DNA of 64,000 bases from Octopus sinensis. Its lineage: Eukaryota. The notes under the pieces were generated by a model that did not search any database, was not told where the DNA came from, and was given only the letters and a program-made list of their open reading frames with translations. The stretch lies in the NCBI RefSeq assembly GCF_006345805.1, contig NW_021833258.1:1-64000 (forward strand). Direction: 5' to 3'. Both the position numbers and the translations under genes were made by a program. Of the stretch, positions 4,502-61,720 are shown one piece after another; the stretch's first letter is position 1; each line of letters opens with the position of its first letter.

Positions 4502-4687
4502 ATCTAGGCCTTAGATTAATAAGGTTTGAATAACCATACGGGGATCCATTTACTATTATTGCAAAATTGTCTAACATTTTGTCAATGTAGAAAATAGAGA
4601 TGAATTATCCTTACTTTTTGACCTTTGTAATTTATAAACAATAAGTCTTTTCAAAACAGGTTCATGACCTATGTGAATCTCCTAAAT

Positions 4688-5080: not shown

Positions 5081-5284
5081 TCCAAATGTTTGGTTCCTCA
5101 ATTATAAAAAAATGATTCTTATATTCATAGTATTAAAAATTATAGTTAATCACAAGTTATAAAATCTTAAAAAATACGGAAAGTAGCATAATGGTCAATA
5201 TCTCTCTAGGAATTGAAAGGTCACTTCGTGGAATTTTATTATTATGGCGAACTAAGTTAAAATTTAATAATAAATAATTCTAGA

Positions 5285-5400
5285 GAGTCATCCTGAGAAA
5301 TCCTGGCTCTTGGAACGTCTGTCGATCGACGCGATCCGCGGGAATGGCTCCGCTAGGCGGGCCGAGCGCCTCGTGAGATTATTGGTTAAATCATCTCAAA
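5285..5400 (+). mobile_element. 3'-terminal remnant of a CRE-type RLE retrotransposon
   Basis: Translates to ..EKSWLLERLSIDAIRGNGSA, the WL.QR.SIAI.RGN end motif seen in the other CRE copies here. Confidence 0.5.
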
Positions 5401-6777: not shown

Positions 6778-8095
6778 CAGTAAACATCGTTAATTGCATA
6801 ACATTTGTCCACGGAAAATCGTATGCAATTAACCGATATATGCAATTATCCGATATTTTAATAAACATCAATAAATTTTTAATAGGCAAGAATAGAAAAT
6901 AATCAAAGACGTTAAAGAATCATTAATGTTGGACTGGCTAGTCTTCTGGCAAAGGCGTAGAGGGCTTTTTTCTAGTTCAAAAAAAGTTTTCCATATCCAT
7001 TTCACTCGTTAAATAGCTGTTAATAAGAAACAACATGCACCCATAGCTTCCGAACTGGTTGCTTTCACGGGTATGGGATCTTCATCGTCCTCATCGTCTT
7101 CACAAGAAATATCTCTTGAAATTAAACATATTTCTTCATCGGACATGATTCCGATACATTCTTCATCCTCATTAGCAACATCCATCGTTATTTCGTCACA
7201 TTCAATGTCACTAAACATATTTTCCCCCACTTCCTCATGGAATCCAGCCTTACGGAAACAGTTGTAAATTGTTACTATTTTGACTTCCCTCCAAGCCATT
7301 TTAATAATAATTAAATTTTAAAATTACAAATTATAATTATGCAAAAATTTTTATAAGAAAAAATAGTAAATGTTCCCAATGAGAGTATGCAATTAACCGA
7401 TTTATGCAATTAACCGATATGCAATTAGCCGATATTTTTTCAATGGAAACCATATAAGTTATGGTTTTAAACATGAATTTATGCCATTAACCGATTTATG
7501 CAATTAACCGATATGCAATTAGCCGATATTTTTTCAATGGAAACCATATAAGTTATGGTTTTAAACATGAATTTATGCCATTAACCGATTTATGCAATTA
7601 ACCGATATGCAATTAGCCGATATTTTTTCAATGGAACCATATAAGTTATGGTTTTAAACATGAATTTATGCCATTAACCGATTTATGCAATTAACCGATA
7701 TGCAATTAGCGATATTTTTTCAATGGAAACCATATAAGTTATGGTTTTAAACATGATTTATGCCATTAACCGATTTATGCAATAACCGATATGCAATTAG
7801 CCGATATTTTTTCAATGGAAACCATATAAGTTATGGTTTTAAACATGAATTTATGCCATTAACCGATTTATGCAATTAACCGATATGCAATTAGCCGATA
7901 TTTTTTCAATGGAAACCATATAAGTTATGGTTTTAAACATGAATTTATGCCATTAACCGATTTATGCAATTAACCGATATGCAATTAGCCGATATTTTTT
8001 CAATGGAAACCATATAAGTTATGGTTTTAAACATGAATTTATGCCATTAACCGATTTATGCAATTAACCGATATGCAATTAACCGATGTTTACTG
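6778..8095 (-). mobile_element. Non-autonomous pogo/Tigger element with an internal tandem array
   Basis: TIRs CAGTAAACATCG(G)TTAATTGCAT with TA on both sides (6776-77, 8096-97). ORF 7009..7299 AW..V...TIYNCFRKAGF plus an acidic tail is the Tigger transposase C-terminus. Confidence 0.85.
7387..8090. repeat. About 7.5 copies of a 94-bp tandem repeat
   Basis: Unit starts at 7387, 7481, 7575, 7668, 7760, 7853, 7947, 8041. Each unit has three ATGCAATTAACCGAT-like motifs and an AAACCATA-TAAGT-TATGGTTT hairpin. Confidence 0.95.
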
Positions 8096-21739: not shown

Positions 21740-22180
21740 TTGATTCCCTCCATACTTGAACCCACTGAGATCGATCAAGGGGATGTGAAGAGACCGGACG
21801 GGATCACTGTATTTTTCCTCAACAAAAGAAAGCCACTCACCTAAGACGCGTGTGGACTCATTCTCGCCTCAGAACCTGCTGATGTCCCCATCCGCCCCTG
21901 GATCAATCGTCACAGTGCAAAAAGATGAGGAAGTACTCTTTGCTTATAGAGAAATACAAATTCCTTTCATTCGCTGTTGAGTCTTCCGGTTCCTTGAAAA
22001 AAGGCCAATTAGCTTCGTGCAGGAGATCGGATCTCGGATGTCTACATTCACAGGCAATGCCTGCGATTCGAAATGCTTATTGAGCGGATATCCCTTGCGA
22101 TAGTACGCTCTAACTCATCTTCGATCGCGTCAGCCTCTGGCATGGCAAACTACCGACACGACAAATAGATTAACATATTT
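21740..22180 (+). mobile_element. Degenerate CRE-type RLE 3' fragment
   Basis: EPTEIDQGDVKRPDGIT..KY...AVESSG..RISLAIVRSN with stops and frameshifts. Confidence 0.75.
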
Positions 22181-22209
22181 TATTCAATGAATTTTGATCT
22201 AAAACTATC

Positions 22210-22890
22210 AATGATCGAGAAGACGTTGCCCCTCAGAATTTGAAATGAGATTCTTTGGAACAGCCATTGCTTCTCCCGAGGTTCTTGTCTCCTGGAGATC
22301 AGTTTCCCGATTCTTCTAACGAGTTCAAGAGATTTGTTGCTCATGGCTCTGGATGTTTCTACAGAGATTAGGGAAAGATCACGTTGTCCTACAGGTTGGA
22401 GTATTTCAAGATTTTATGTTCATCAGCCTTTTTAGCGGCTGACTCTGGACTGATTGCCTAGTCGACTATATTCGTTTTCGAGAAAGTGTCCGTGCATGTA
22501 GAATCGCATCCGAGGCATTTCAGATTAATCCACGGAAAAAAATGACTCCATCTGGGCGTTTCCCGTCTGCACGCTAAAGCCTAACAGGCTCTAGTTCGGA
22601 AGGGAATCCTGCAGCTTGTAACGTAGTCAAAATAATCTCGTTGATAACGGAATATCTGGGTCACGCCCAGCACTCCTTCTCCATGAAAAGGGGTGTAGTC
22701 CTTTGGTATCGACTTTACTCTCACATCGGCATTGGCCCTCCGAACAAACATTAATTCCCAAGTGCATTGATATGTCAATCCTCACACAGTAATCATCGAG
22801 AAAAGTTCCAGACTGGAACTTCTTTATGAAAGAAGTCGTTAGAGGGGCGGTTTCCCTCGCGATAGGAATGAAACGATGCGGTTCGAGCCT
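22210..22890 (-). mobile_element. Degenerate CRE-type RLE 3' fragment, tail-to-tail with the previous one
   Basis: Minus strand: MHLGINVCSEGQCRC..VDTKGLHP..RPDG.. and IGKLISRRQEPREKQWLFQRISFQILRGN. Confidence 0.75.
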
Positions 22891-23416
22891 CAATGCAAGG
22901 TTGTCTGAGATGGATTTGCAGTTTGATTGCTACCAAGGATGAATTATTTATGATAAAAACAAGAGCCAATGTTACAGATTTGGTTAACATTAAATACACC
23001 ACAACAATGTGTCAGAATTTGTTAAAATCCTTTTTTCACCTAGCTTTTTTTTTACTTGTCACACGACACTCCCCAAATACCTTTGCAGTGATGCTGGATT
23101 TCTCAAAGGGGTCCAACAATCTGAGGAGTAACTGTATGTTGGAATCATGCTCGCGGCGTACGCCTGAGATCATGACTGGCTCACCTTGCTTACGGATTCA
23201 AAAGTTCGCTTTTCTTTGACAAACACAATGTCCGTTCCCTGACTGAAGTCCAAAAAATTGAGAATATACACTCCTCGCCAAAAAAAATGATTCAAAATTC
23301 ATATTTAGTTTTTCTTTGAAAATCTTATAAATATTCTAATTTCAAAAAACTTAGTAGATTAGTTGTAATTATTATTATTTAATTTTAATAAAATATTTGT
23401 TAATTGCATTAATTTG

Positions 23417-35441: not shown

Positions 35442-36934
35442 GTCTAAATGAATACACCTGACATCTTTGTTTTGGCTCCGTATTTAATGACCATTTAGCA
35501 TTTTTCCGCACCTTGTTGGTAAGCGGTCCACCGTCGTCAACCCTCGTAATCCACAATTAAATATTGGTCCTTCATCATATATAGGGTTGGTTCGCTAGCT
35601 GAGAAGTTTTTTAAATACTTTTGCCAACACGAAGACTCAATTATGTTCCCTACAAATTAATTTATAGTGATATTATTAGTTAAAGATTTTTAATTTTTTG
35701 TTTTCTCACTAACAGATGTCAACAACCTTGCTGCTATTTATAACCCTGCTGACACTTCTGACCCGAGAGGGTGTGCGGCATTTGCCTTGGGTGTGCAGCA
35801 TAAAAGAGCTCTGATCCAATAACAACACAGAACTGTCCAAAAATGCCATTTCACATATTATTATCAATTGCAAAAAGTTTTACTCAGATAACTGGAAAAC
35901 CAAAAGATAAAGAAAAATGATTCCCTGTATAAGAGTGGACAATTCATGAGCTCATTAATTTGGTTTTTTTAACAAAAGAGGTAATCAGAGAAAACTTTTT
36001 ATTAAATTACAACAAATAAAAATTTTTCTCTAAAAAGTCAATTTTATTGACCTTGAAATTTTAAAAATTGTTTAAAAATCGACCTAAAAATACAAGTCGT
36101 ATACAGATGCTGATTGATTCATTGTTCAGGAACATACCGACTGACGAGATCGGTAACGCATTGAGCCAATCTGCCGAATGTGGTTGACAAGCGCGATGAA
36201 TACTTGCTAACTGAGACTGGTCGGCGTGGGAGCAGATAATTTTTTAAACAATTGTCTTCGATAATTTTTTTTACAAAAAGTGCTTCGACACAAGCAATCA
36301 ATTTTGTTGACTTGATAATTTACTTTTATTTAAGTGCATAATTATGCACCAAATGAGCAAAACATGTGATATAGTATGGATCACAATAAAATAATTTTAG
36401 AGTACTTCCTGCAAAAACTATATATGAAGCAGCATCAGTGATATGAAGAGAAAAATTCTTTTTTTTAATTAATTTTCCCTATAGTGTCATTAACAATTTC
36501 GACCTATAATAGAAGAATTTGGAAAGAAATCAAATGTTATAAAATTTTTTTAGATAATATCTTTGTAAATTTGCAAACGTTCCAACTAGACAGTCCACAA
36601 ACAAAAAACCTTAACAATTAAATAATTCAAAATAACTTTCTTTTGTTAAGCTAAAATTTCTACTATATAGCGGCAAGTAAACTTTAAAAGAAATGGATGT
36701 CCAGCACTTTCGAATAAGTTCGTTTACAAAAAAGCATTACATTCGGTGCAATAAAAAATTTTTTTGGGATCTTTTTCGCGAATATTTTTAGCTTTTATAA
36801 GATCAGAAAGCTCATTTTTATGGATATCTTTATAATTTAGAAAAGACTTTTAAAATAACAAAAATGTGATGCCGATTATTTTAAATTTATTTTGACGCTT
36901 AAAATTATGATATATTATTATTTAATTTTTTATT

Positions 36935-37330: not shown

Positions 37331-37489
37331 TTTTTTTTTCTACTAGCGCACAATTTTTGGCCTCATCGGGGGCATTTTTTTGCAATTAAATGGTATAGTT
37401 AAAATTTAATAATAAACGTAAAACAATTTATTTTTAATTTGAATTAGTAGGGTTTTTGGCCCCAATTTGCTTTGTTTCCTACGTGGTTT

Positions 37490-37630
37490 GGAGAGAAGAA
37501 TTGCCAAAAGAAGGGACGACCTGAGAGAGTCCTTTTGGCTTCTTCAACGCTTCATCATTGCCATAATCCGCGGCAACTGTTTCGCAATCCGTGATGTTGG
37601 GAGGGCGTCCTAAACTGCGTAATCTTAAAC
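37490..37630 (+). mobile_element. CRE-type RLE 3' remnant
   Basis: IAKRRDDLRESFWLLQRFIIAIIRGNC. Confidence 0.6.
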
Positions 37631-38099
37631 AAACTTTCTTTTTTTCTAACATTCTGGATGAAATTTTAACTATTAAAAAAATTTATTTTCACGATTTCGA
37701 ATTGCCTGAGACTCTTTGGAGAAGATGAAGAGTCTCGTTGTGGTTTTTGCTTTTCTTAGCGATCTTCGTCCCCAGCCAACGAAAAAAAAGAAAGTGATTC
37801 CGGACCGATTACCCCTAATTTCTCGGCGGCTATTGGCGCAAAAATTTGATTTCTAGTCAGGAACGAGTATTTTTTTGATTTTATGAGCTTTACGAGTTTT
37901 GCCGCCGAGCCGGGCTCAGCAACTGATGAGACATAAAAAATATCATAACAGACAATTTAGCAATAATTCGGTGAGATTTCTGATCTTTTTGTTCAGAATA
38001 ATTATACTTACTGGTTCTGGTTCTATGTTGTATGTCTGGTTTTATGTTGGACAAAGCTACTTGCATATCATCTTATACCTGTGGTTATTTCTATATTTT

Positions 38100-39600
38100 G
38101 TTTTTATCGCCGACCACTTCAAGAGACGACTCCAAACAGATGACACTTATACAACCACATTAATTGGTCATCCGCGAGGTTTATTGAACGAAATAACACT
38201 CTCGGAGGTCCTAGAAGCATTTCACCGTATGAACAATAACAGAGCTGCAGGATATGATGGAGTCCCAGGGGAACTACTCATATACGCTCCCAACAGTCTA
38301 GCGAGCTTTTTCGCACAGATACTGAACAAGGCGTTTGCCCAACACTGCCCACTTCCAATCGGGACAGGAATAATAATACCCGTCCAGAAACCGGGCAAAC
38401 AATGGGGACCCTGTGGAAGCCTGACACCGGTTGTATTAGTCACCTTTCTAAGGAAAACTCTATCGACTATTGTTCGAAACCGAATATCAAGATCAGTTGA
38501 TCGTTATCTCTTGCAGTCAGAGTGGCTTCAGACCTGGAAGATCCACGGCTAATATTGTTTGGACCCATCGCTGGATCAATGCAATATGTCAGAAGTATAA
38601 ACGATCCTTTCATGTCCTGGGAATCGACATGAGCAAAGCTTTTGATAGCATCAACAGGAGTAAACTACTTATCGTGTTAAAGAACATTGTAGATGAAGAC
38701 AGTCTACGCATGATACATATGCTATTATTGGAAACTCAACTTCTTGTCAGAATTGGCCCTAAGGAGTCTAGACTATTTCCTACAAATGTTGAAACCCCAC
38801 AAGGGGACACACTATCGCCTATATTATTTATCGTCTATCTGGAGGCAGCTCTGAGAGACCTAAGAGTAGAAATTGGATGTATGGACAACCAAGTTGTGGA
38901 ACTCATATACGCGGATGATCTTGATTTTATTACGAAGGATCGGAAATTAATAGAAATTATTATGGAGAAAGCAAGAACAATTTTCGATAAATGGTCACTC
39001 AATGTCAATAAAGAGAAAACCGAAATAACCACCGTCGAACGTATGCCAACTCGCATAGATGAGAAGTGGCGAAACGTCCGAAAACTCGGATCTCTTCTTG
39101 GCGATTCCGAAGATATTACCAGACAAAAAATATTATCAACAATTGCACTTAAAAAACTTCAATCTATCTGGATGAGAAAAAACCAAATTTCGACTAAGAT
39201 GCGCATACGATTATATAAAGCATTTGTCCGACCTGTCCTCATGTACAACGCAGGTACTTGGGGACATCAAAGAAAAACATGGAGCAACTTGACTCTTTCC
39301 ACAGTGGTCAACTGAGAAAACTCCTTGGCTATTCGTGGCCGAAGAAAATATCAAATGATCAATTATACAGGTTAGCTAACTGTGGGCCTATAAGTCTAAA
39401 TACTTACGAAGGAATATGCTCGGATGCCGATTGAAGGATGCAGACGATTAGGACGAAATCAGAAAGAGGGCAAGACGACGGAAGGGATGGAAGGGTCTAA
39501 CAACAAGAATAGTTAAAAACATGGCACAAGCGAAACCATAAACTTTGTTTACTGGCAACGCGAACGTGCATTAACTAACTAACTAGATAGTAGATTGTTT
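38100..39600 (+). mobile_element. 5'-truncated non-LTR retrotransposon RT (RTE-group-like), frameshifted
   Basis: AAGYDG..ELL, QSGFRPGRST, GIDMSKAFDSI, PQGDTLSPILF, YADD, LYKAFVRPVLMY across ORFs 37899..38552 and 38470..39315. (TAAC)n near 39570. Confidence 0.85.
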
Positions 39601-40879: not shown

Positions 40880-41169
40880 TAGTTTTCTGCGTTCCGACTT
40901 CCAATTATTTTCAATATTAGTTTTGGCCATTTTTGCAATAATAAATTTGACCTTGTCAATCGTGGAACTCGTGGGCGGCTTTTACTCTCTGGGTTTCAAC
41001 TAGGTGTACAATTATTGGGGTATACTGTCGGCATCTTGGTCGTTTATTATAGTAATTAAATCACTAAAAGATAATTGTCTTGATGATTCTTTCATATCAG
41101 TAATACAAATCCCACTGAATAAGTTGAACAATTTGAATAAGCAAAATATTTTATTTATACGCCGCTGAA

Positions 41170-41630
41170 TTTCCCTCGATGTTAGAACCGATAGGACTAG
41201 ACCGTGGAGATGGAAAACGCCCTGACGGGTCGACCTTATTCCCGTTCAGGGAGGGAATGGCACTCGTGTGGGATGTTACCTGCGTAGACTCATTTTCTTC
41301 ATCATCGTTGGTTGACTCCGCTTCTCGTCCTGGATCTGCATCTGCCCTTGCCGAATCTAGGAAAACTGCAAAATATGCCTCTTTGACCGATACCTGCTGC
41401 TTCATTCCCCTGGCTTTCGAAACCAGTGGGATAATTGGACCCAAAGCCCTCAAACTCCTCTCAGAGATTGGTTTAATCATCTCGAGGAGGAGTCACGACA
41501 GTCGTGAAACGAGCTGGCTTTTTCAGCGGATATCGTTCGCGATATTACGTGGAAATTGCCTGTCCGTCCCCTCGGCGACTCATCTAAATTAGTTAACTTC
41601 TCTATTTTACTTGTTATTTTATTAAAAAAA
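41170..41630 (+). mobile_element. 5'-truncated CRE-type RLE retrotransposon
   Basis: ORF 41179..41592: EPIGLDRGDGKRPDG..WDVTCVD..AESRKTAKY..LAFETSG..WLFQRISFAILRGN. Confidence 0.9.
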
Positions 41631-44769: not shown

Positions 44770-45630
44770 GGTCCCCCAAAACCTTCAAGTCAATTTTCTG
44801 CGTTTTTGTTAAATGAACAACAAGAAAGTCCTCGACTCACATGATGTGGTCCCCCAAAACCTTCAAGCCAAAAAATTTAAAAAAAATTATTTTCTGCGTT
44901 TTTGTTAAATGAACAACAAGAAAGTCCTCGACTCACATGATGTGGTCCCCCAAAACCTTCAAGCCCAAAAATTAAAAAAAAATATTTTCTGCGTTTTTGT
45001 TAAAATGAACGACAAGAAAGTCCTCGACTCACATGATGTGGTCCCCCAAAACCTTCAAGCCAAAAAATTTAAAAAAAATTATTTTCTGCGTTTTTGTTAA
45101 ATGAACAACAAGAAAGTCCTCGACTCACATGATGTGGTCCCCCAAAACCTTCAAGCCAAAAAATTAAAAAAAATTATTTTCTGCGTTTTTGTTAAATGAA
45201 CAACAAGAAAGTCCTCGACTCACATGATGTGGTCCCCCAAAACCTTCAAGCCCAAAAATTAAAAAAAAATATTTTCTGCGTTTTTGTTAAAATGAACGAC
45301 AAGAAAGTCCTCGACTCACATGATGTGGTCCCCCAAAACCTTCAAGCCCAAAAATTAAAAAAAATTATTTTCTGCGTTTTTGTTAAAATGAACAACAAGA
45401 AAGTCCTCGACTCACATGATGTGGTCCCTCAAAACCTTCAAGCCAAAAAATTTAAAAAAAATTATTTTCTGCGTTTTTGTTAAATGAACAACAAGAAAGT
45501 CCTCGACTCACATGATGTGGTCCCCCAAAACCTTCAAGCCCAAAAATTAAAAAAAAATATTTTCTGCGTTTTTGTTAAAATGAACGACAAGAAAGTCCTC
45601 GACTCACATGATGAGGTCCTCCACAACCTT
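44770..45630. repeat. About 9 copies of a ~96-bp tandem repeat inside the Helitron
   Basis: Unit ATGAAC(A/G)ACAAGAAAGTCCTCGACTCACATGATGTGGTCCCCCAAAACCTTCAAGCC..TTTTCTGCGTTTTTGTTAA, with two interspersed variants. Confidence 0.95.
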
Positions 45631-47905
45631 CAAGCCTCGTGAGGCCATTAATTAGCTTAGCTATCTTTTTTCGATGACATAAATTCTTTTTTGTTAAATT
45701 TTCGTTAAAAAAATAAAATAAAAGCTCTAATTGTTATCGACCATGAATAGACTGTGCAATTATCAGATTTTGAAAACCACTAAAAAGGAAAAAGCAAAAA
45801 TTATTAGAGATTTACATAATTGATTCTTTTTAACTGCCGAAACTGACAAATTCGATTATGCTACTGTTTAGATTTCTTAAAAGATAGAGGCAAATAAAAT
45901 TTAAATTAGTCATGTAATTTCAATTTGCCTATATTTAAATCTCCTTGATTTAACAGGCTTTAATTTTTTTCCTTATAATACTACAAAGATGAAGCTGATT
46001 ATCATTTTCTTTACCGAAACAGACAAGTTCGATTATGCTAAAGTTTCAATTCCTTTAAACATAGAGGCAATTAAGTATAATGGCTTTGATTGGATAATAC
46101 ACTTTACATAAATTTCACTAAATAAATTTACGTAGAAAATTTAATATAAATTACTGATTCGCGTTTACAAAATCATAAGAATGTCCTATAAAGAGAGATC
46201 TGAGAATGTTAACAAACAAGAGAATATGAACCATATAACAAAAAAAGAGAAACGAGGGAAGATGTGCTTAAATGGTGAGGGAACTTAGACAACAGCTGAA
46301 CAAGGTCAGGACTGCTGTTAGACTCAACTACGGGTAATAGAATTATGCATTCTAGGTTAATTGTTTGGGATGAATGTACGATGGCTCATAAAGGCGCATT
46401 CAAGCAGTTGACCGAACATATAGAGATATCAAGAATTGTAGCGACCATTTGTTTGGGGGAGCATTAGTTGTATTGGCAGGTGATTTTAGACAGACGCTGC
46501 CAATTATTCAAAGAGGGACGCCTGCGGATGAATTGAATGCCTGCCTCAAATCGTCATATTTGTGGACACACGTGAAAAAGGTAAGCTTAGATGTAAATGT
46601 ACATGCACATTTACAAGGCGTTAATAGCATATTCCCACAAATCCTTCTAGATATTGGAAATGGGGCAATCACTTCAGAAATGCACGACCAGAAAATTAGG
46701 CTACCGGAAGAATTATGTATTTTCGTAGAAACAGCAGAAGCATTATTGAATGCCGTCTATTCCGAACTATCTGAACACTACGTGAATTTCGACTGGCTGC
46801 GTGAACGAGCTATATTAGCTCCACTTAATGATGAGGTACTTAATATAAATTTAGATTTATTAATGAAAATCCCTGGCAGAGAAAGAATATATAAAACGGT
46901 CGACGTTATTATGGACCATGAAAGGGCCTGCGATAGATTTAAGAGACTACAATTTCCGCTGAAGATAAGTTTTGCTATGACAATAAACAAGGCCCAGGGA
47001 CAGTCTTTAAAGGTAGTAGGCTTATTTTTAGAGAACGAGTGCTTTTCACATGGCCAGCTGTATGTGGGGTGCTCAAGGGTAGGTAGAAGAGAAATTTATT
47101 TATATTTGCCAAGGATGGACGGACTGCAAACATCGTTTATCCACAGGCCTTAGAATAAGGTTATATCAAAGCAGGTCGCATTTATATATCTACATAAATT
47201 TATAGTTATTTAAGGAAACTGCGAGCGTAGCGAGCAGGGCCTCCGCAGGAGCTAGCTCGCAGTGAGCGAAGCGAACTGCTGAGCTAGTGTTATATATAAC
47301 TGTAGGCCACACACACATTAGTAATGGCCACTGCATCCCCTGAACGGACGTAGGATATGGCATCTCGGAGATTTACCAGATAAAGTGGCCACAGATGTTC
47401 AATGAATGTTCTAGAATGAATAATCAGGCATAATCACCCTCCCTCAGATGGATAGTTCAGTATAAATCTACTGCTGGAGGAATATGCAGCTGAATAATAA
47501 ATATATATTACTAACCATGTCGAACAGGCCAACTTTCGTCTCCAAATAAAGTCAAAAACATGTCAAAAAATGAATTAACATGAGGTTCCATGACTTGGTG
47601 GTCAATATATCAATTTTTGTCACATTTTGTGACCTTCAAGACCAACTCGTTCACAGCCAAACATGCTGATTCTCTCACAGCGTGATTCTCCGCCTGACAT
47701 TCCTCCAAATAATAAATAACCTGCAAAATATAACCAACCAACCACCGTCTCCTTCATGTTCTGCTCAATCAGGGACCTTCCCTCATTCCCAGTGATCTCT
47801 GGCCACGCCCTCCGAGCCAACAACCTGACTCCCTTTCCCAAATAGTGCCTATTAAGACACAAAGGTGGCAATAAAATCGATAAATATTGATTTTTCATTG
47901 ATAAA

Positions 47906-51384: not shown

Positions 51385-51900
51385 ATGGGGACGGAAAAAA
51401 ACCTGACGGGATCACTGTGTTTCCCTTCAACAGGGGAAGCCTCTTACCTGGAATGCCACGTGTGTGGACTTTTTCTCGCCTCGGAACCTGCTGACGGCAA
51501 GTGCCTCGTCTGGGATGCTACGTGCATCGATTCTTTCTCTCCATCGGCAATCATGTCATCTGCCACTTCCCCCGGGTCCGCTGCGGAAAAGGCTGAGACG
51601 GCCAAAATTAAAAAATACCAAGAACTTGGACGCCGTTTGATATTCGTACCAATCGCTTTGGAGACATCGGGCGTTGCAGGGCCTATAACTTTGGCCTTCA
51701 TCAGCGACATCGGGAGGAAATTGGCCCACAGGACGAAAGAGCCACGCGAGGTTTCGTGGCTATTGCAGCGGATATCCATCGCCATTCTCCGTAGCAACAC
51801 GCATGCGGTACTTTCCGAGGAGGGTGCGTGCTTTAGCCCCCCGGAATTTCCCCTCTGTACATTCCTAACTTAATTTGTTTTCTCTGAAATTAAAAACACA
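51385..51900 (+). mobile_element. 5'-truncated CRE-type RLE retrotransposon
   Basis: DGK.PDG..LVWDATCIDS..AETAKIKKY..IALETSG..WLLQRISIAILRSN. Confidence 0.88.
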
Positions 51901-52114: not shown

Positions 52115-52520
52115 TACTAGCTCGGCAGCTCGCTTCGCTCACCGCGACCTAGCTCCTGCGGAGGGCCTGTTTCATCAAACAACTATAAGTTTATGTAGAT
52201 GTATAAAACTACTACCTTTAATGACTGTCCCTGGGTTTTGTTTATTGTCATTGCAAAACTCATCCTCAAAGGAAATTGCAGCCTTTTAAATCTAAATGGT
52301 AATTCATCAAAAATTATCGGAATTCGTGGAATATAAACATCCTCACCTCTATACTTACCTGTTAATATCGTCGCCACTACTATTAGCCATCAATTTTTGA
52401 TAACTAACCTCGTTCCGTTGCATAATTTAGGTGGCGCAAGATTTCGTAATAAAACCACTGGAACGCCTATCTTTAACTTTAAAAGATGATTCGGCATTCG
52501 AGAGGGATCTAAGGAGTTTA
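52115..52520 (-). mobile_element. Helitron 3' end with Pif1 helicase fragment
   Basis: The reverse complement of 52115-52170 matches the 3' hairpin-CTAG end at 47235-47287. Translation [44 protein letters not shown]. Confidence 0.88.
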
Positions 52521-52904
52521 AAAATTCAATCCGGTTGAATTTTTAGAAAATAACAAAAAAAATAAAAAAAACAAATAAAAATAAATAATTTAAAAACAAA
52601 AAAATAAAAAAAAACAAAAAAAAACTTTAAAAATTTGTGTAATAGTATAAACAAAAAAAATCTCTGCCGCCACGGCAACAACCTGTCTAATTTTTTTAAC
52701 AGCCAATTAAGATAATGCTTAAGAGCCTTTATAGTCCGAAGATTTAGCTTAGTGACCTTGATTAGACAAACCACTGGCGGAAATGGGGCACCTGGAGATG
52801 GGGCAGGCAGAGATGCGGCAGGCAGAGTAGCAGCAGCCAAAAAAGCGACACACAATAAAGATTAAATTAATTACCTTAAGCTGACCGTTTTTTCTTCAGC
52901 TTCG

Positions 52905-53130
52905 TTTTTCCTCCTTCGTTTATCTATTTAAAAAATTATTTTTGAATAATAAAAAATATTAGGAAAAAAGAGGCATACAGAAAATAAATTCTATCTTTAC
53001 GAAAAACTTCTTTTCTTAAGGTCGTCTTCCCTCCTTCGGTTATCTATTGAAAAAATTATTTTTGAATAATAAAAAAGTTTAGGAAAAGAAGCATACCGAA
53101 AATAAATTCCATCTTTACGAAAAACTTAAC
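52905..53130. repeat. Two ~120-bp direct repeats
   Basis: CTCCTTCG(T/G)TTATCTATT..AAAAATTATTTTTGAATAATAAAAAA..AGGAAAA..GCATAC.GAAAATAAATTC.ATCTTTACGAAAAACTT occurs twice. Confidence 0.8.
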
Positions 53131-53389
53131 TAAATATTTAATATTTTTACGCAAATTCTTCTGATTGCGCTGTCAATTGGTGGTAAATTGTGTTAATGAT
53201 TGTGGAAAAAAAGTTTTGCACGTTGTTGCTGTTGTTGTTCATTTCATTTTCTCTTTCAATTTTCTTTTTCATTCTTTGTTTTCTTTCTCTTTTCACTTTT
53301 TTTCAATCTTTTTTCGTTCTATCTAACCCACTCTTTTTCATCTCATTCTTTCTTTCCTATCTCATCTTACTTTATATCTCTCTATCCCC

Positions 53390-53563
53390 ATGTCATTTTG
53401 TTTTTTTTGTAAATCTGTTAATTCTCGCAAAACTGGTCGTTCCTGCGCCTCTTGCAATCAGTTTTTCCACCTCTCGTGTGTTAAACTCACTAAACGTGAT
53501 TCGGCGTCAATCCTTTCTTGGAAGTGCCCCTCATGCCTCCCACACACGTGGATCCCTAACTAA
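53390..53563 (+). CDS. PHD finger (C4HC3) at the start of the CRE-type ORF; 57 aa before a frameshift
   Basis: MSFCFFCKSVNSRKTGRSCASCNQFFHLSCVKLTKRDSASILSWKCPSCLPHTWIPN*: C-x2-C-x11-C-x2-C-x4-H-x2-C-x13-W-x-C-x2-C. Confidence 0.8.
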   Translation: MSFCFFCKSVNSRKTGRSCASCNQFFHLSCVKLTKRDSASILSWKCPSCLPHTWIPN

Positions 53564-54910
53564 GCCTTCTCCCCTCCCGGCGCCCATCCCGCCTGACAAG
53601 TTTCTGTCGCTTCTTTCCGAATCCCGAAGCCTCCGCGTAATCCCTGCAAGAATTCCCAAATCTGCGCGAATCTGCGTTGCTGATACGCTATCCGACATAA
53701 TCGATCAGTCCCTTAAAAGCAATCTTCCAGAACTTGGTGCAAACTATTTTCGTTTCCTTCTGTTTGTCTGGGAGCTGCCCCTCGTAAAACGGAGTCAGTA
53801 AATAGGACATCGGCCGCTCAGCAGATTAAAGACCGCTGCAGTTCGTTGATAAAGGCACCCTTCGACTTATCATGGATCACGCCAGATCGCCCCTCGACCG
53901 CGAAATCTCGCGGGCCTCTTAAACAAGACGAAGGGGTACGCTTAGCCCGGTCAGTTAACAGCAAACTAATGCAGGGAGATGTCTCTGCTGCTGTTCGCCT
54001 TATTTCATCCACGGCATCCATTGCCCCGCATACTGATTCTGTTCTGAATTCACTCCAGTTGAAACATCCTCCCCCTCCACCTGATATCCGTGAACCCCCT
54101 CACATAGCCAAAACCGAACGAATTGTTTCCTCCAGTGACGTGTTAGCCTGCCTTGGATCATTTCCACCGAGCAGTAGCGGGGGAGTAGATGGCCTAAAGC
54201 CGATACACCTAAAGGATCTTGTCGCGCCCATGACAGGGGAATCTGGTGCACGCCTCCTGTCCTCGATTGCATCCTTGTGCAGCAGAATTGTCTCTGGAAA
54301 TATCCCATCTTTTGCACGCGATTTATGTTCTCGGCCAAACTGACGGCACTTAATAAATTGATGGGGCATCAGACCCATCGCTGTGGGAAACACATTCAGG
54401 AGGCTCTCTGCAAAAATTATCCTCACTGTTATCCTCCTGATTTGAGCTCTCAGCTGCTGCCACATCAGTTCGGTGTCGGTGTTCGCGGTGCTTGTGAGGC
54501 TTCTGCCCATGGGGTGAGGGAGTTGATCATCAATGGCAATCCAAAAATCCCATATCTTGTTAAGCTGGACGTGCGCAACGCTTTTAACAGTGTTCGCAGA
54601 GACCACATCCTGTAAGTTGTGCACACCCGCTGCCCGGCACTCTACCCAATTGTCCATCTATCTTATGCGCGTTCCTCGAATCTCCTTTTTGGGAAAAATC
54701 TGCTGTCTTCAGCGTCTGGGGTTCAGCAAGGGGACCCATTGGGACCTCTCCTATTTGCCCTCGCAGTGGACCATATTGCTCAAAGGCTTTTGTGCCCGTT
54801 AAATTTCTGGTATCTCGACGATGTCACCTTAGGTGGCTCGCTTGAAAATATTCATAACGACGTTGCTGATATTATTTCGGGTTTTAGCCAAATTGGCTTA
54901 TCCCTTAATG

Positions 54911-57053
54911 CAGTGGTTCTCAAACTTTTTTTCCTTGCGTACCCCTTGCCATCTAAATAATTTTTCGCGTACCCCTTATCGATTTTTAAAAATTAAGGAA
55001 AAAAAATATTTAATTAATGAGATGGATGGTGTTGTTTATCAATCACTAATCTATCGATTTCTGGATCCTTTGACGAAAGACACACCCGAATATCATGAAC
55101 AACATTCAGCCTCGCACGATGAACTGATTTAATTAAACAACGATGAAACCTTGTTCGCAGAGATATGTAGTCGGAAACAAAAGCAAAAAATCGATTATAT
55201 AAAATCCAATATTGTGATATTTTGATGTCATTTTACACCAAAATTCAATTAATGGTGCAGATTCAAATAAGATTTTTGACTCGTAAGAATTTATTAATTC
55301 AATAACTTCTTCTTGAATATTTGAAGGCAAAACATTAACTTTTACGGAAAAAGGATTGACAAAAAACTTAAGATCTACTTCATTAATTTCAGGTATATAT
55401 TTTTCAATTTCATTCTTCAATCCAAGTAAATGGAAGTTATTTGATGTTTTAAATTTTCTATTTCATTTAATTTTAGATGGAAAATGTTTTCATTCAACTT
55501 ATCAAACATAGTAAAATTAGAATTTGTTGTATTATCTATCCACAGTTGGAGCTTCATACGAAAAGACCTACAATATTGCATTATTTCGTAAAAAACCTTG
55601 TTTTTTCTAAAAAGTCAACAATGGTAACTCCCTTAGTTTGTACCGATAAATTCAAAGCATTAATTCGCGAAAAAATGTCCGTTAAATAAGATAGCATTAC
55701 ACCCCAATACATATTGATAACTTTGATAAATATAATTTTTATTTTCGCGAAAAAAATATTCATAAATTTCATTCTTCAAACTGTGCACTCTGGAAAGAAA
55801 TTTCCTTTGGATAACCATCGAACTTCTGTGTGATATAGTAAAACCTTCTCATCTGAACCAAATTCTTCACAAATTGAATAAAAATTCGCGAATTTAAAGG
55901 ACTTTTTTTGATATGATTGACAATTTTAATAACATCGTCAAGAACATTTTTAAGTTCAAGAGGCATTGTCTTCACAGCAAGAACATAACGATGCAACATA
56001 CAGTGAAGATGTTTTACATTTGGATTGACAGATTGTACTCTACCTCGGAAACCAGAGTTACATCCAAGCATAGCTGGTGCTCCATCTGTGGTGCATGCAC
56101 TAAGATTTTGCCACAATAGGCCTATCATAAGTAAAAAATCAAAAATGTACCTTCTGTTTCAAAAAAACAATTAACTGCATCGAAAATATCAGAACCTTTG
56201 TGTTTAAAGGTAAGGAATAGTTGAACAAAAATTCTTCCTTAATATTTTCCATATAAAATATCGCACATAAACGAGTAACTGAGAGCAATTTGCTACATCT
56301 GTTGATTCATCCAATTGAATTGAAAATTTTTTAAAGGCAGCACTTTTTATTTCAGTAATGACCTAATAATAATTAACCAGAAAATAACTTGTTCTTTTAT
56401 GTTTTCGGATAGATCTCGTATTCTTCTATTGACGGTATCATTTGAACATGGAATTTTTCGAACAATATGCTCCAATTTATTGCCAGGGAAACATTCAAAC
56501 ATGTCCTTAATGCGTATAATAAGATTCTCGGCAATTGTATGTGGTTTTTTTTGGCTTTTGCGATCCGATATGAAATCATGTAAGAGAGTTTTGATAGTAA
56601 AAAATAATGTCAAAATTGAAAGAATCGTCTATTTTCCGAATATTATCTTTTTTTTCTTAAAAAATCATTTGGTTTTCCGATAGTTTCGAAATGATTAGAA
56701 ACTTGATGCCGAGAAAGTAATGAAGGTTTCATGGATTCAGGGCAAAGAATCTTTTGGCAAATAATACACTGCGGATGTGGCACACCGTTTTTAATCACAA
56801 AATAAAATCCATAGTTGAGATAACTATCGTTGTATTTTCGAATCTTGTTAACAGGTAAACTCAGAAAACTAGTAGCGTGGAGATTTATTTTATTATTATT
56901 ATTTAATTTAATTATGATTTTTATTATAATTAGAATTAATAACTTTTTTATGTTGAAACGAAAATTAAATAGATTTTCAAAAAATTTTCGCGTACCCCCT
57001 ACAGAATTTCGCGTACCCCTAGGGGTACGCGTACCCCAGTTTGAGAACCACTG
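54911..57053 (-). mobile_element. Buster/ZBED-like hAT with at least two micro-introns, frameshifted
   Basis: TIR CAGTGGTTCTCAAAC, perfect TSD CCTTAATG. Introns 56363-56388 and 56122-56150 restore IKEQ-VITEIKS..LDESTD and FETE-G-LLWQNLSACTTDGAP. Confidence 0.93.
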
Positions 57054-58058
57054 CCTTAATGGCTCCAAGTCGGAATTTACCCTGCTTTTCTCGATCATTC
57101 TTTATTTTATCCTGCTTTCACGTCCCTGTCCAGAAAGTTGTCGGTCTCTCTGCGACAGACCCGGACGATCTGGTCATCCTTGGTTCACCAATCTCTGGTC
57201 GAGGTATTTCCGCCGCCATTGACGTAAAAAACGCAGCTGGTCAAACACTGGAGCGTATCTCCCAACTGGCGCACATGTCGGGCTATTCCTTATAAGAATT
57301 ACCTATTCATCCCCCGCCTAACCTACCTATTCCGCTCGTCTCCATGCTTTCGGGAACCAGACCTCTTGTCCGACCTGGACTCCGTAATCTGGAAGTCAGT
57401 TGGGAAGCTTCTTAATGTTGACTTTGGCGGGGACCTACTTACCCGCGCAATGTTACCCCTCCGTTTCGGAGGCATCGGTATCCGCTCGTGCAAAGACATT
57501 TCTATCCCATGCTACCTATCTTCGCTCTCGGCATCAAGAAATTTTGTCAGTTCTGTTCTTTTTCGCTCCCCTGAACGTTTTGAACTAGCTGAATTTTCTT
57601 CTGCCCTCGCTGCCTGGACCGCCTCAGGTCTTTCCTTCCCCGTGGAGGATCACTTGCTGAGGAGTTGGGACTCCATCCGCTGCAAAGAAGTGGTAAAGTC
57701 CCTTAAAGGAAGCGCCGATCAAGTTAAACTCGCCTCGTTGAATGCAGCCTGTCACCCGCATTCTGGAGACTGGTTGAAAGCCATCCCTCTGTCCACCGCT
57801 GGCCTCCTCTTGGATGATGAATCGACTCGAATCGGGACCTGTCTTCGTCTGGGAATTCCCCTCTGCCACCCTCACCGGTGCAAGTGCGGCCACATGATGC
57901 CCCGATGGTCTCCACCCCCTTTCGTGCCGCTTAAGCACCGGGCGTATCCCGAGACACGCTGGCCTGAACCACGTCGTCAAACAGGCCCTCAATGCCGCAG
58001 GCTTCCCTTCTGTTCTGGAGCCTGCCGCCTCGACCGTCGCGACGGCAAGCGTCCAGAC

Positions 58059-60368
58059 CAGTGGTTCTTAACCTTTTTTAAGTCAGCGCCCCCTTTGACA
58101 CAATTCGAAGCTTCAAAATTTCAGCGCCCCCCTATTATTTAATTTATTTTTTTCAATTATAGATTTATTGGCAATTTTTTCGCCAATTGTTTCATTTTAA
58201 TATTTTCGAATATTACTTATTATTTTTTTAGAATTAAAAAGGGTATTCACAAACCAAACTTTTTTATATAAAAAAATTTTAGTGACTGCCTTGTGCTTGA
58301 TGGGAATTTGTCAATCGTTTTATGTCAGCTTCAATAGTCGACAGACTTAGTCTCAAATCTCCTCTATTCACAATTTGTAATTTATTTCTTTTTTTGGTCA
58401 AAATATTAGAGACTGCACTAAATCCTCTTTCAACTAGATATGTTGAAGGAAATGCTATTATAAGTGTTTCAATTTCATTCCACAATAAAGGATATTTTTT
58501 TCTATGAGTAACCCAGAATTGTTGATATCCATATTTGTTGAAAATGACTTTAGCTTCAAAGTCATATTTCAGATTTAATAAATTTTCTGTTATTTCTTGA
58601 GATAAATTAACGTTTTCAGTTTCAAATGGATTTATATACCAATCAAAAAATTTTAAATTTTCTAAATCTTCAAAGCGGATTTTCATGTCATCTTTAACAT
58701 TTTTAGATGCAAGCAAAAGCATTCACAGTCAGAATCCGTTAATTTTTCGACCTAATAAATATTATTACAAAAAATAACCCCAATTTTTGTAGATTTGGAA
58801 AATTAATAAAAATCTTTTTCTTAATATTGTTTTCATAAAGTTGTAATTTTTCAATAAAAGGCATAATAATTCCTTTTACATTTATTAAATTGATATTGTT
58901 TCCTTGCAAGCTAATATTTACTTGGTTGATTTTATAAAAAATATCAGCTAGATAAGCTATATCAGCTTTCAATAAAATCAACTTACTAAAATGATTAAGG
59001 AATAATTACCTAAAAATTCTCTGCTCATGTAACTGACAAAATTCTAAGATTGAATCATACAATTCAAAAAATCGACACAAACAGTTTCCTTTTGAAAGCC
59101 ATCTAACATGGGTATGCAAAAGAAGTCGTTCATAATGCTCATCGTTTTGTTCACAAATATGTCGAAATATTCTCGAATTCAATGGGTGCATTTTAATACG
59201 ATTTATTGCACATATGACAACATTTAGTGATTCATTCAGCCTCTCACTTAAATTTTTCGCAGCTAAATGCTGTCTGTGAATGACGCAATGGATTGTAAAA
59301 ATATTCGGTACTTTTTCCTTCATATATGCCAAAAACCCACGATGAACTCCAACCATCGCAGGTGCCCCATCTGTTGAACAAGCAAAAATATTGCTAAGGG
59401 GTATTTCATGTTTCAAAAAATATTGTTCAACAGTTTTGAAAATTGTTAATCCTCTTGTATCGAGTTCAAGGTGTTCAGAAAATAAAAATTCTTCTTGAAT
59501 TACATCATTTTGATTAATATAACGTACGTAAACTAATAAAAGTGCAACACTATCGTTGAATGTCGATTCATCAATCTGAATTGAAAATTTTGTTGTTCTT
59601 AAAAATGCACATAGGGTTTCTTCGATATCAAATGCCATTTCATCAATTCTGGAAGAAACAGAACTATTACTCAAAGGAATTGATGAAATTATTTGTTCAG
59701 AATCACAATCAACCATTGAATTTAACACTTCTTTGATAGCTGGTAATATTAATGACTCTCCAATAGTATGAGGTTTTCCTGATTTCGCTATCAATTGCGA
59801 TATTTTGTATGATGCTAATAGGCCTTTTTCAAGCATCTTCGAATTTTTTTGTAAATAGTTGATTAATCATAAGACGATTTTCATAATTATATTTCAGATT
59901 AGAAAAATAATTGATATCCGCATCAAGTTTGTCAGGATGACAAATCTTAAGATGATTTAGCATTCTTGAAGGCTTCATTCCTTCATTTGTAAAGACCTTT
60001 TTACACATAAGACACATTGGAAGTGAATTGTTATGGTCGTAGGGTATCACTCCAAACTTTAGGTATTCATCCGAATATATACGTCGTTTTACTTTTATCA
60101 GACATCTATAAAATATAATTAAAATATTTATTAAAAAGTTCTAAAATATTAAATACAATTAACAAATATTTATAAATATTATCAGTGAATAATTTTTTAC
60201 GTACACACACAGACAATTTGAATTTAGAATTAATAGAAAAGCACGTGATAATGATTTACAAAAACTAATAAAATATTTATAATAATTAAAAAAATTAAAA
60301 TTCCAGCGCCCCCCTAATATGTTCCAGCGCCCCCAGGGGGGCGCCAGCGCCCCCGTTAAGAATCACTG
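58059..60368 (-). mobile_element. Buster/ZBED-like hAT with two micro-introns
   Basis: TIRs CAGTGGTTCTTAAC / CAGTGATTCTTAAC, perfect TSD GTCCAGAC. Intron 58986-59009 and probable intron 58752-58778. IDEST, TDGAP, HCVIH, RWLSKG, STYLVERGFS all present. The remaining breaks are 1-nt indels in homopolymer runs. Confidence 0.93.
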
Positions 60369-61039
60369 GTCCAGACGGAATGACGGTCTTTCCATTCTCG
60401 GAGGGGAAATGTCTCGTTTGGGACGTTACCTGCGCGGACACCTTTGCCCCCGGGACCGTTGCTCAGTCTGCGTCCTCCCCCGGCTTCGCTTCCCGTCGGG
60501 GTGAGGAGACGAAGCGGAAGAAATACGTCTCTCTCTCACCAAATTACCACTTTGTCCCGATTGCTGTGGAGACAAGTGGGGTGATAGGGACGGGCGGAGT
60601 ATCGCTTCTGTCCGAAATTGGGAAGCGCATCAACAAGGGCACGAAGGACCACCGCGAAATCAGCTGGCTGTACCAGAGGATATCGATCGCAATCTTGCAA
60701 GGTAACTCGCTTGCAATCCGAGGTGCAGCCACTGCTGACTCTTAATTAGCTATTTTGGTTAAGTTTTTTTTTTCGATTGACTATCAAAGTGTTTTTCAAA
60801 ATCTGTTAATTGCACTCTATTCAAAGTCGTGCAATCTGTAATTGCACATTCTGTCAAAGTCAAATATGATAATCGCTTTAATTTTGATTCATGGTCGATA
60901 ATGATATATGCATTTAATTTTAAAGAGAAAATCATAGGATGAATTGAATTTCTTTATCGCGAATAATTGGGAGTTCATCATTGTTAATATTCTCTCTGTC
61001 GTTTTCATCAAGGATATTCTTGACGTAAATTTTACCTGG

Positions 61040-61720
61040 AAGGTTTAATGACCTCATCATATGTCGAAGACATTCACGTTGTTCATTTTAACCAAAAGCA
61101 GAAAATTTTTTTTAATTTTTTTTGGGGGGAAGGTTTTAAGGACCTCATCATGTATTCGAGGACATCGTAGTTGTCATTTTAACCAAAATGCAGAAATTTT
61201 TTTTAATTTTTTTTGGGGGAAAGATTTCAAGGACCTCTCATGTAGTCGAGGACATCGTATTGTTCATTTTAACCAAAATGCAGAAAATTTTTTTTTAATT
61301 TTTTTTGGGGGGAAGGTTTTAAGGACCTCATCATGTAAGTCGAGGACATCGTAGTTGTTCATTTTAACCAAAATGTAGAAAATTTTTTTTAATTTTTTTT
61401 GGGGGGAAGGTTTTAAGGACCTCATCATGTAAGTCGAGGACATCGTAGTTGTTCATTTTAACCAAAATGCAGAAAATTTTTTTTTAATTTTTTTTGGGGG
61501 GAAGGTTTTAAGGACCTCATCATGTAAGTCGAGGACATCGTAGTTGTTCATTTTAACCAAAATGCAGAAAATTTTTTTTAATTTTTTTTGGGGGAAGGTT
61601 TTAAGGACCTCATCATGTAAGTCGAGGACATCGTAGTTGTTCATTTTAACCAAAATGCAGAAAATTTTTTTTTAATTTTTTTTGGCGGGAAGATTTTAAG
61701 GACCTCATCATCGAGGATAT
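61040..61720. repeat. About 7 copies of a ~94-95-bp tandem repeat, inverted homologue of the 44.8-kb array
   Basis: Unit AGGACCTCATCATGTAAGTCGAGGACATCGTAGTTGTTCATTTTAACCAAAATGCAGAAAATTT..GGGGGAAGGTTTTA. Confidence 0.95.

Follow-up and report, generated by a model that had tools for sequence, protein, structure and literature searches.

The subject of this analysis is a short open reading frame (ORF) in the genome of Octopus sinensis, located in a stretch of 64,000 nucleotides (contig NW_021833258.1, positions 1 to 64,000) which is referred to as the window. The ORF of 57 amino acids (53390-53563, forward strand, frame 2) has the translation MSFCFFCKSVNSRKTGRSCASCNQFFHLSCVKLTKRDSASILSWKCPSCLPHTWIPN and encodes a zinc finger of the PHD type. 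Its identity as the native N-terminal PHD finger of a 5′-complete, dead retrotransposon without long terminal repeats (a non-LTR retrotransposon) of the CRE group ('CRE-II'-like), as well as the architecture of this element, can be regarded as almost certain. Translations and tblastn searches with relatives place the element on the forward strand at about 53217-60745, in the order PHD finger, linker, reverse transcriptase (RT), CCHC knuckle and restriction-like endonuclease (RLE).

The zinc ligands of the finger follow the pattern C-x2-C-x11-C-x2-C-x4-H-x2-C-x15-C-x2-C (C4HC3), with a tryptophan two residues before the last cysteine pair. The Pfam profile PF00628 is matched along its whole length (positions 1-47 of 47) with 30.7 bits at a gathering cut-off of 24 (E=3.2e-7), which exceeds the chance expectation, and it also matches 29 of 29 family fingers at E<=0.01. 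The full C4HC3 finger that an earlier note had recognized from the letters alone, with the proposal of this profile search, was thereby confirmed. The fold predicted by AlphaFold2 (AF2; predicted local distance difference test, pLDDT, 87.2) consists of two short strands and a helix. The ATG of the ORF is the first one in frame downstream of an in-frame stop codon, and the 160 nucleotides 5′ of it (53230-53389) consist of C and T to 84%, in agreement with the pyrimidine-rich leader described before. Behind the finger, translation resumes in the +1 frame as TKPSPLPAPIPPDKF...RVIPARIPKSAR, including the motif RIPKSAR, so that, as the same note had stated, one frameshift lies between the finger and a proline-rich linker on the same strand. 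A second PHD finger was not found in the 64-kb window. Two weak tblastn matches at ~20.5 kb and ~23.8 kb lack the C4HC3 pattern on inspection and were rejected as zinc fingers, one of them lying within the RT tail of another long interspersed nuclear element (LINE).

Relatives of the element were collected with its pre-RT piece, for which phmmer returned 1626 matches at E<=1e-3 among 1.84 billion representatives, the best with 60% identity. The same finger (C..C...N.RK....C..C....HL.CV.LT......W.C..C) lies upstream in 18 of the best 150 of these matches, and the full-length proteins which carry PHD and RVT_1 domains in a single ORF include P0017, P0029 and P0062. Intact relatives encode one polyprotein with a PHD finger, a proline-rich linker containing RIPKxAR, the RT, a CCHC knuckle and an RLE of the PD-(D/E)xK type. 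Pfam recognizes only PHD and RVT_1 in the full-length relatives; no Exo_endo_phos domain, the mark of an apurinic endonuclease (APE), was detected by Pfam, and no separate ORF1 is present. The RIPKxAR motif occurs in 109 of the 263 relatives retrieved up to that point. In P0043 (locus L001), finger, linker and pre-RT region are read in one frame, with a finger 53% and a linker 44% identical to those of the window; by tblastn, the linker identity is 57% for locus L002 and 46% for locus L009. P0001 (L002), the closest named relative, has the linker and no finger upstream, looks 5′-truncated and is uninformative in this respect. The wider family also has named proteins in the databases, from Lepidoptera and tardigrades, none of which has a PHD finger. 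Several database proteins of the family are already tagged PF00628+PF00078 by Pfam.

Two further copies with a PHD finger were identified at the second O. sinensis locus, L009 (contig VCDQ01011117.1), and their fingers are 50-64% identical to that of the window. The forward copy has an uninterrupted ORF (2248-5349) of 994 amino acids from the ATG at 2365 (2365-5349), in which the PHD finger is followed by the ARIPKSAR linker, the RT, LPLRFGGLGVR, CQPHRCRCG..HALSC and DGKRPDG..VWDVTC. Judged by this intact reading frame, the forward copy may be active, and no clear target-site duplication (TSD) was resolved for it. In the reverse copy, the ATG, the finger (64% identical to the window finger), the linker and the pre-RT region are continuous. 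The NCBI gene model at this locus (P0005, 608 aa) omits the finger and the linker. The two copies, which differ from each other, stand head to head about 1.8 kb apart (L009:1-5349), with an integrase-like ORF (1443-2288) between them.

Moreover, the ENA assembly ERZ26859072 contains a PHD family with 170 cluster members, whose copies are 99.2-99.3% identical over 3336 bp; they encode the intact ORF P0301 of 1046 amino acids. PHD, RT and RLE thus stand in one ORF in L009 and in P0301, as well as in P0017 and P0029, and the copy in the window is itself broken. The single ORF that the earlier note had asked for in full-length copies was therefore found in both genomes, and its view that the finger belongs to the retrotransposon was upheld by P0043 and both L009 copies, in which finger, linker and pre-RT region are contiguous.

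The reference set for the classification comprised 17 RTs of RLE-type LINEs from the alignment of Mahbub et al., 2017 (PMC5678591, supplement S5B). For every piece of the window element and every full-length relative, the best BLASTP match was Cre-1_BM, labelled '#LINE/CRE-II', with E=9e-26 for the longest RT piece of the window and 38-55% identity over ~425 amino acids (E 1e-90 to 1e-173) for the full-length relatives. SLACS, CRE1, CRE2 and CZAR followed, and R2, NeSL, HERO and R4 were far weaker. A maximum-likelihood (ML) tree (LG+C20+F+G4) separated SLACS, CZAR, CRE1, CRE2, CRE-II and the PHD family from R2, R8, R4/Dong, NeSL/Utopia and HERO with a support of 100/100, and the longest RT piece of the window nested with P0001, P0004 and P0017. 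By its RT sequence the element is CRE-type, as had been proposed. Membership in R2, R4, NeSL or HERO, the latter being the usual home of non-specific RLE elements (PMC4640811), was rejected on the BLASTP ranking and the tree split.

Within this tree, the PHD-bearing rows group together in a single subclade (93/97). A larger tree, with 78 non-redundant CRE-II-like proteins, gave the PHD clade 98% SH-aLRT support, and the finger or an N-truncated remnant of it was found in 14 of 14 of its rows. These trees suggest a single origin, the finger having been acquired once. Upstream of RIPKxAR, other subclades carry C2H2 fingers (the subclade with Cre-1_BM and Lepidoptera) or a single knuckle of the form C..C...HGP...C.GSG (the largest subclade), and further N-termini in the wider CRE-II-like family are Cys-rich CXC-like, SAP-like or ankyrin. 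Since the modules differ by RT subclade, the N-terminal slot is considered as an exchangeable module that tracks the RT lineages. At the other end of the protein, a ubiquitin carboxyl-terminal hydrolase (USP/UCH, PF00443) follows the RLE in P0049, P0068, P0101, P0145, P0278 and P0306 of the PHD clade (ORFs of 1256-1806 aa), and P0068 matches the whole UCH profile with E=1.6e-57. Other relatives have an Ulp1 (PF02902, P0337) or OTU domain (PF02338, P0263) or ankyrin repeats. We know of no description of a deubiquitinase fused to an RLE LINE.

Among known elements, the family is most similar to Cre-1_BM, with which it shares the motif set GGxDGL, GGIRPIAVG, LDxxNAFN, QQGDPLGP, WYLDD, LPxRxGGxGxR and CxCG...H..SC as well as the clade in both trees. 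It differs in that Cre-1_BM belongs to a subclade outside the PHD clade, the full-length members of which begin with C2H2-type fingers (e.g., P0178 of Epargyreus clarus). In the RT tree, the CRE-II-like family has the trypanosomatid elements SLACS, CZAR, CRE1 and CRE2 as its sister group; to our knowledge, none of these four has a PHD finger. Canonical CRE elements encode the RT together with an endonuclease region at the C-terminus in a single ORF and are specific for spliced-leader RNA genes (PMC4640811), whereas the PHD family inserts at unrelated sites and reaches an RT identity of only ~23-29% with them. The order of an N-terminal nucleic-acid-binding module, RT, CCHC knuckle and RLE is shared with R2 (R2Bm, R2Tg, R2Pm), which also gives the best whole-length fold match. 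R2 is specific for 28S rDNA and has a C2H2/Myb N-terminus (PMC11331408). In contrast, the PHD family belongs to another RT clade (100/100), has a PHD finger at its N-terminus and shows no ribosomal DNA (rDNA) target.

PHD fingers as such are known from LINEs, namely from the ORF1 protein (ORF1p) of elements of the CR1/L2/Jockey superfamily (PMC3708506; see also PMC4120745, PMC3905857). In Crack-17_BF and some CR1 families the finger precedes the endonuclease within the pol ORF (PMC3708506). The statement of the earlier note that such fingers are known from the CR1/L2 group is correct in this respect. Unlike those elements, which have an APE endonuclease, the family described here carries the finger at the head of an RLE-type CRE-group ORF without APE or ORF1. 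A CR1/L2-type LINE with a PHD-bearing ORF1 was rejected as an identification of the locus, as intact relatives read finger and RT in one frame and no APE is present. N-terminal zinc fingers have been reported for RLE LINEs, and Ulp1 proteases for some NeSL/Utopia elements (PMC4640811). In the open-access full text, which does not cover Repbase, Dfam and subscription journals, no report of a PHD finger on a CRE or other RLE element was found, so the remark that no PHD-CRE element had been described holds within this scope. A CRE-group RLE LINE with a reader-derived PHD finger as its N-terminal module thus appears to be new.

The features of the element and of its insertions are listed in Table 1. 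The copy in the window contains 7 frameshifts, 3 in-frame stops (54341, 54359, 54613) and 2 nested insertions of hAT-type DNA transposons, and because of this damage it is a long-dead fossil, the finger included, without a function of its own. Despite the decay, the domains can be followed to the end. The region 57062-58058 shows ~35% identity over ~260 amino acids to P0004, P0151 and P0301 and the final RLE part (60377-60745) 56% over 116 amino acids to P0004 (tblastn). The signatures CHPHRCKCG...HPLSC, GKRPDG, WDVTC and KRKKY of knuckle and RLE are preserved. In alignment A2 of the relatives, the residues of the CCHC knuckle and of PD...D...K are invariant, and the C-terminal PD-(D/E)xK domain is a predicted restriction-like endonuclease.

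Table 1. Features of the PHD-bearing CRE-type element and its nested insertions in the window (UTR, untranslated region; TIR, terminal inverted repeat).
Feature	Position	Strand	Remarks
Putative 5′ UTR	53217..53389	+	CACGTTGTTGCTGTTGTTGTT, then T/C-rich leader; 5′ boundary approximate
PHD-type zinc finger ORF, 57 aa	53390..53563 (C4HC3 core 53399-53536)	+	Frame 2; PF00628, AF2, Foldseek
Pro-rich linker with RIPKSAR (53649-53669)	53559..53798	+	Frame 3; single frameshift near 53537-53565
Pre-RT N-terminal extension, motif-0 region SSSGGVDGL (54170-54196)	53801..54340	+	Frame 2; phmmer
RT fingers and palm	54328..54910	+	Frame 2, then 1; partial PF00078 match, E=2.1e-5
RT motif GIRPIAVGN	54365-54391	+	Frame 2, after two in-frame stops
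RT motifs LDVRNAFN, QQGDPLGP, FWYLDD	54559-54588, 54718-54747, 54805-54825	+	Frame 1; stop at 54613
hAT-type DNA transposon 1, nested, foreign to the retrotransposon	54911..57053	-	Interrupts RT after IGLSLN
RT 3′ part and thumb, CCHC knuckle, RLE start	57062..58058	+	Frames 2, 3, 1, 3; four further frame changes
LPLRFGGIGIR; knuckle CHPHRCKCG...DGLHPLSC; DGKRPD	57453-57485; 57864-57927; 58041-58058	+	
hAT-type DNA transposon 2, FAM200/ZBED5-like ORFs, nested, foreign to the retrotransposon	58059..60368	-	Splits RLE within PD motif
Rest of RLE and C-terminus	60377..60745	+	Frame 2; motif 60410-60433, KRKKY 60512-60526, VPIAVETSG; stop codon 60743-60745
3′ UTR start	60746..60790	+	3′ end and tail undefined

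The 5′ end is probably located near 53217. The sequence CACGTTGTTGYTGTTGT and the T/C-rich tract behind it align with the leader of another octopus copy (53219-53277 with L009 702-640, 76%, E=1e-4), and no homology to L009 was found further upstream of 53219. The pyrimidine fractions of the octopus leaders are 0.84, 0.70 and 0.68. An Rfam scan of 52400-61200 detected neither an HDV-like ribozyme nor any other RNA family at the 5′ end; its sole match was RT-6 inside the first hAT element, with 22.2 bits against a gathering cut-off of 46.7 (E=0.26). Two tandem units of ~118 bp with 88% identity (52890-53127) precede the presumed 5′ end by about 90 bp. Further upstream on the reverse strand lies an ORF of 64 amino acids (52183-52377) ending in ...RLQFPLRMSFAMTINKTQGQSL, which has no Pfam match at E<=0.01 and which we take to resemble the C-terminal motif of a PIF1-type (Helitron-like) helicase. 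On the 3′ side, the DNA beyond 60788 corresponds to a different repeat, which borders a ~94-bp satellite; this satellite also occurs at 44792-45781.

Both hAT elements are flanked by perfect 8-bp TSDs. The first one has the duplication CCTTAATG at 54903-54910 and 57054-57061 and the TIR CAGTGGTTCTCAAAC with its inverse, and joining its flanks restores the in-frame reading ...IGLSLNGSKSEF. The second one has the duplication GTCCAGAC at 58051-58058 and 60369-60376 and the TIR CAGTGGTTCTTAAC, and its joined flanks restore the reading of the RLE. The TIRs of both elements have the form CAGTGGTTCT..AAC. In the second element, a match to the hAT dimerisation domain and precomputed Pfam matches to FAM200-ZBED5 and DUF4371 were obtained, with an ORF at 59006-59836. 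The same coordinates hold for this ORF on contig VCDQ01005811.1 of assembly GCA_006345805.1, in which a relative of the element carries an NCBI name as an O. sinensis protein, so that the window corresponds to the first 64 kb of that contig. As the ORF of 276 amino acids is identical at a second place in the same genome (L008), the family of the second element has moved recently. A 57-bp match to the end of the first element was also found at 4681-4737 of the window.

No further DNA copy of the same family is present in the 64-kb window. It does contain at least five more CRE-II-like fragments with 5′ truncations (21743-22935, 36094-36249, 37443-37953, 38614-39246, 41155-41577, 51387-51816). 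They lie on both strands, comprise mostly the RLE and the C-terminus, show 35-59% amino acid identity to relatives and have 3′ UTRs that look very short; two of them stand tail to tail at 21.7-22.9 kb. None of these fragments has a PHD finger, as 5′ truncation predicts. In addition, arrays of the ~94-bp satellite occur at 61038-61711 and 44792-45781 on opposite strands, with units that are 88-93% identical within and 77-81% identical between the arrays, and each array is adjoined by a short common sequence (60788-60829 and 45738-45781).

The type of the finger was determined by profile and fold comparisons. The best PDB matches of the family profile were PHF2 (1.6e-9), followed by PHF8, EBS, BPTF, TAF3 and CFP1. 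Foldseek paired the model of the window finger with the PHD fingers of Alfin-like 1/3, BPTF, PHF8/PHF2, TAF3 and Pygo (TM-score, TM, 0.73-0.79), and the complexes of the Alfin-like 1/3 and BPTF fingers with methylated lysine 4 of histone H3 (H3K4) superpose on the AF2 model with a root mean square deviation (rmsd) of 1.1-1.8. Since the best matches in profile and fold are readers of di- or trimethylated H3K4 (H3K4me2/3), the finger derives from this reader type. With these readers (PHF2, PHF8, BPTF, TAF3, Alfin-like 1/3, EBS) it shares the ligand spacing and the core C-x2-C-x4-H-x2-C-V-G-[IL]...W/Y-x-C-P-x-C.

In 29 aligned family fingers the C4HC3 ligands and W44 are invariant, R13 and K14 reach >=90%, and loop 1 has the near-invariant sequence N-x-R-K-[RK]. 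Reader PHD fingers aligned to the family profile carry W-F/Y-H, C-D-x-C and acidic helices. In loop 1, where the readers have their cage tyrosines, 30 of 36 fingers of the family lack any aromatic residue. Only about one third of the members have an aromatic residue two positions ahead of the histidine, at the cage position (F in the window), and the tryptophan of the readers is not conserved. S, N, R or K stand in place of the acidic residues of the readers (C-D-x-C, acidic helices). Over the 46-residue core, net charges range from +1 to +10 (median +6), whereas the aligned stretches of PHF2, PHF8, EBS and BPTF have charges of -4 to -8. The signature of H3K4me3 readers, an aromatic cage together with acidic residues for H3R2 and A1, is thus not displayed by the family fingers. 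Because the H3 tail is itself very basic, a basic finger is a poor partner for it. Its composition would plausibly suit DNA, RNA or a nucleosome surface that is acidic, and binding of this kind is also what the conserved N-x-R-K-R loop points to.

For target-primed reverse transcription (TPRT), R2 serves as the model of the mechanism, and its N-terminal zinc finger and Myb domains bind the target DNA. The AF2 model of P0301 (pLDDT 70.3, RT core 85-95) matches the TPRT complexes of R2Tg, R2Pm and R2Bm (9nl3, 9nl2, 9dou, 8gh6, 8ib*) over ~900-1100 columns with E 1e-22 to 1e-16, followed by LINE-1 ORF2p, group II intron RTs and Prp8. A phmmer search of a full-length relative against the PDB returned a single PHD chain and did not detect R2. 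On the basis of the model and of the invariant residues of knuckle and RLE, the element quite probably encodes an R2-like TPRT machine. Its PHD finger occupies the N-terminal slot which in R2 is held by the binders of target DNA, and which sister CRE-II lineages fill with C2H2 fingers or a single CCHC knuckle. Because of this position and of the modules in sister lineages, the PHD finger is taken as the module for target engagement.

According to the proposed mechanism, an ancestral finger of the H3K4me3-reader type would have lost the conserved cage and acidic residues and would have gained a strongly basic character with the N-x-R-K-R loop. The basic finger would then tether the ribonucleoprotein (RNP) electrostatically to DNA, to the nucleosome or to another nucleic-acid surface with little sequence specificity, and such weakly specific tethering would yield dispersed insertions. 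Binding of DNA or chromatin by a basic surface, rather than reading of H3K4, is suggested tentatively by the residues of the finger and is given a little less than an even chance. It is ranked above canonical H3K4 reading because the finger is basic and the reader residues are not kept. The explanation as a whole, i.e., a native PHD finger of a CRE-group element, an R2-like TPRT and basic tethering, is considered the best one, with a probability of roughly 0.55.

The insertions available for comparison belong to the young P0301 family. Its copies lie at unrelated AT-rich sites, and one of them ends in ~25 A. Two copies are nested in another RT-bearing repeat, at different positions and in different orientations. 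The TSDs look variable, with ~7-8 bp where they are readable. One copy (L004:3740-3770, 7170-7190; L003:930-1000) has CTTTCTAACTTTCTAACT on both flanks, which is absent from the uninterrupted host repeat (TATGTAAACTGAACG). This duplication is not a simple TSD, and template jumps at integration may account for it. The flank of a PHD-family copy in ERZ26859072 (L003:7230-7260) contains CAGTGGTTCCAAAATTGGG, a hAT terminus of the kind seen in the octopus window, which hints at a host that may be a related invertebrate. The flanks of the window copy are intergenic DNA rich in transposable elements. No sign of a specificity for spliced-leader RNA genes or rDNA was found, as no RNA-gene family surrounds the window copy in the scanned region 52400-61200. 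The claim that the relatives share no target sequence agrees with the few P0301-family insertions inspected, a tiny sample which is silent on chromatin.

The strongest competitor of electrostatic tethering, although unlikely, is a functional reader of the H3 N-terminal tail which senses the methyl state of H3K4 and steers the TPRT machinery to a chromatin state, analogous to the chromodomains that guide chromoviral integrases. It would explain the profile matches to H3K4me3 readers and the close superposition on the Alfin-like 1/3 and BPTF complexes, the retention of the finger across a clade whose RTs are only ~40% identical, the aromatic cage residue of the window copy and of about one third of the members, and the insertions without a shared target sequence. 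However, most fingers have nothing equivalent to the cage tyrosines of loop 1, the family does not conserve the tryptophan before the histidine, other residues have taken the place of the acidic ones by which readers hold H3R2 and K4, and the median net charge of +6 should repel the very basic H3 tail, unlike the acidic stretches of the four aligned readers. Of the chromatin-reading idea in the earlier note, the kinship with H3K4me2/3 readers in sequence and fold therefore stood, and the conservation of the reading residues did not.

An improbable alternative is that the finger is native but does not choose targets, and acts instead in RNP assembly or cis-preference through the own RNA of the element, in nuclear import by the R-K-R loop, or in the recruitment of host proteins. 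The basic and conserved N-x-R-K-[RK] loop resembles a monopartite nuclear-localisation signal and is compatible with RNA binding, and the C-terminal ubiquitin hydrolase in some members of the clade suggests an interplay with host proteins. Against this speaks the location of the finger in the slot which contacts the target DNA in R2, and which in sister lineages is filled by classical C2H2 DNA-binding fingers, tracking the RT subclades. Finally, the ORF might be a host exon or part of a CR1/L2-type ORF1, unrelated to the retrotransposon that it abuts. A frameshift does lie behind the finger, and PHD fingers are on record for the ORF1p of CR1/L2-type elements and for the ORF2p of some Crack/CR1 elements (PMC3708506). 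This reading can nevertheless be dismissed, since it is refuted by the two L009 copies with the finger in frame with the same linker and RT, with further in-frame homologues in L001 and dozens of full-length proteins, a single RT subclade for all PHD-bearing relatives, and neither APE nor a separate ORF1.

Several points weigh against the preferred explanation of an R2-like element tethered by a basic finger. At the cage position in front of the histidine, an aromatic residue (F/Y) has been retained in the finger of the window and in its closest relatives, and since the finger has genuine H3K4me2/3 readers as its nearest neighbours in sequence and structure, a residual or atypical interaction with the histone tail may persist. 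The basic N-x-R-K-R loop may simply be a nuclear-localisation signal. The R2-like mechanism is deduced from a model of moderate confidence (pLDDT 70) and from conserved motifs. The ML tree with 17 references is midpoint-rooted and came with long-branch warnings, neither the 3′ end nor the TSD could be defined for the window copy, and the insertion sample is small, with only 3-4 sites of one family.

What makes the finding interesting is the clade together with the intact octopus copy, and not the fossil of the window. For the annotation of cephalopod assemblies, it explains orphan PHD ORFs beside fragments of an RT. R2 and other LINEs of the RLE type serve as a model of TPRT and are under development for gene insertion (PMC13580325, PMC11331408).

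The N-terminal DNA-binding modules of RLE LINEs are thought to set the target choice. One RT family with PHD, C2H2 or CCHC modules in the same slot is therefore a natural comparative system for insertion-site choice, in which it can also be asked whether a chromatin-reader fold can be recruited for this purpose, and intact, apparently young copies exist in O. sinensis (L009) and as P0301. In a bolder and decidedly speculative version, a widespread CRE-type clade, found in the octopus and in many eukaryotes of environmental assemblies, has swapped sequence-specific fingers for a reader-derived PHD finger that docks the TPRT machinery on the histone tail or the nucleosome surface. If this were true, it would be the first chromatin-guided RLE LINE and a natural swap of an N-terminal module that re-programs target choice.

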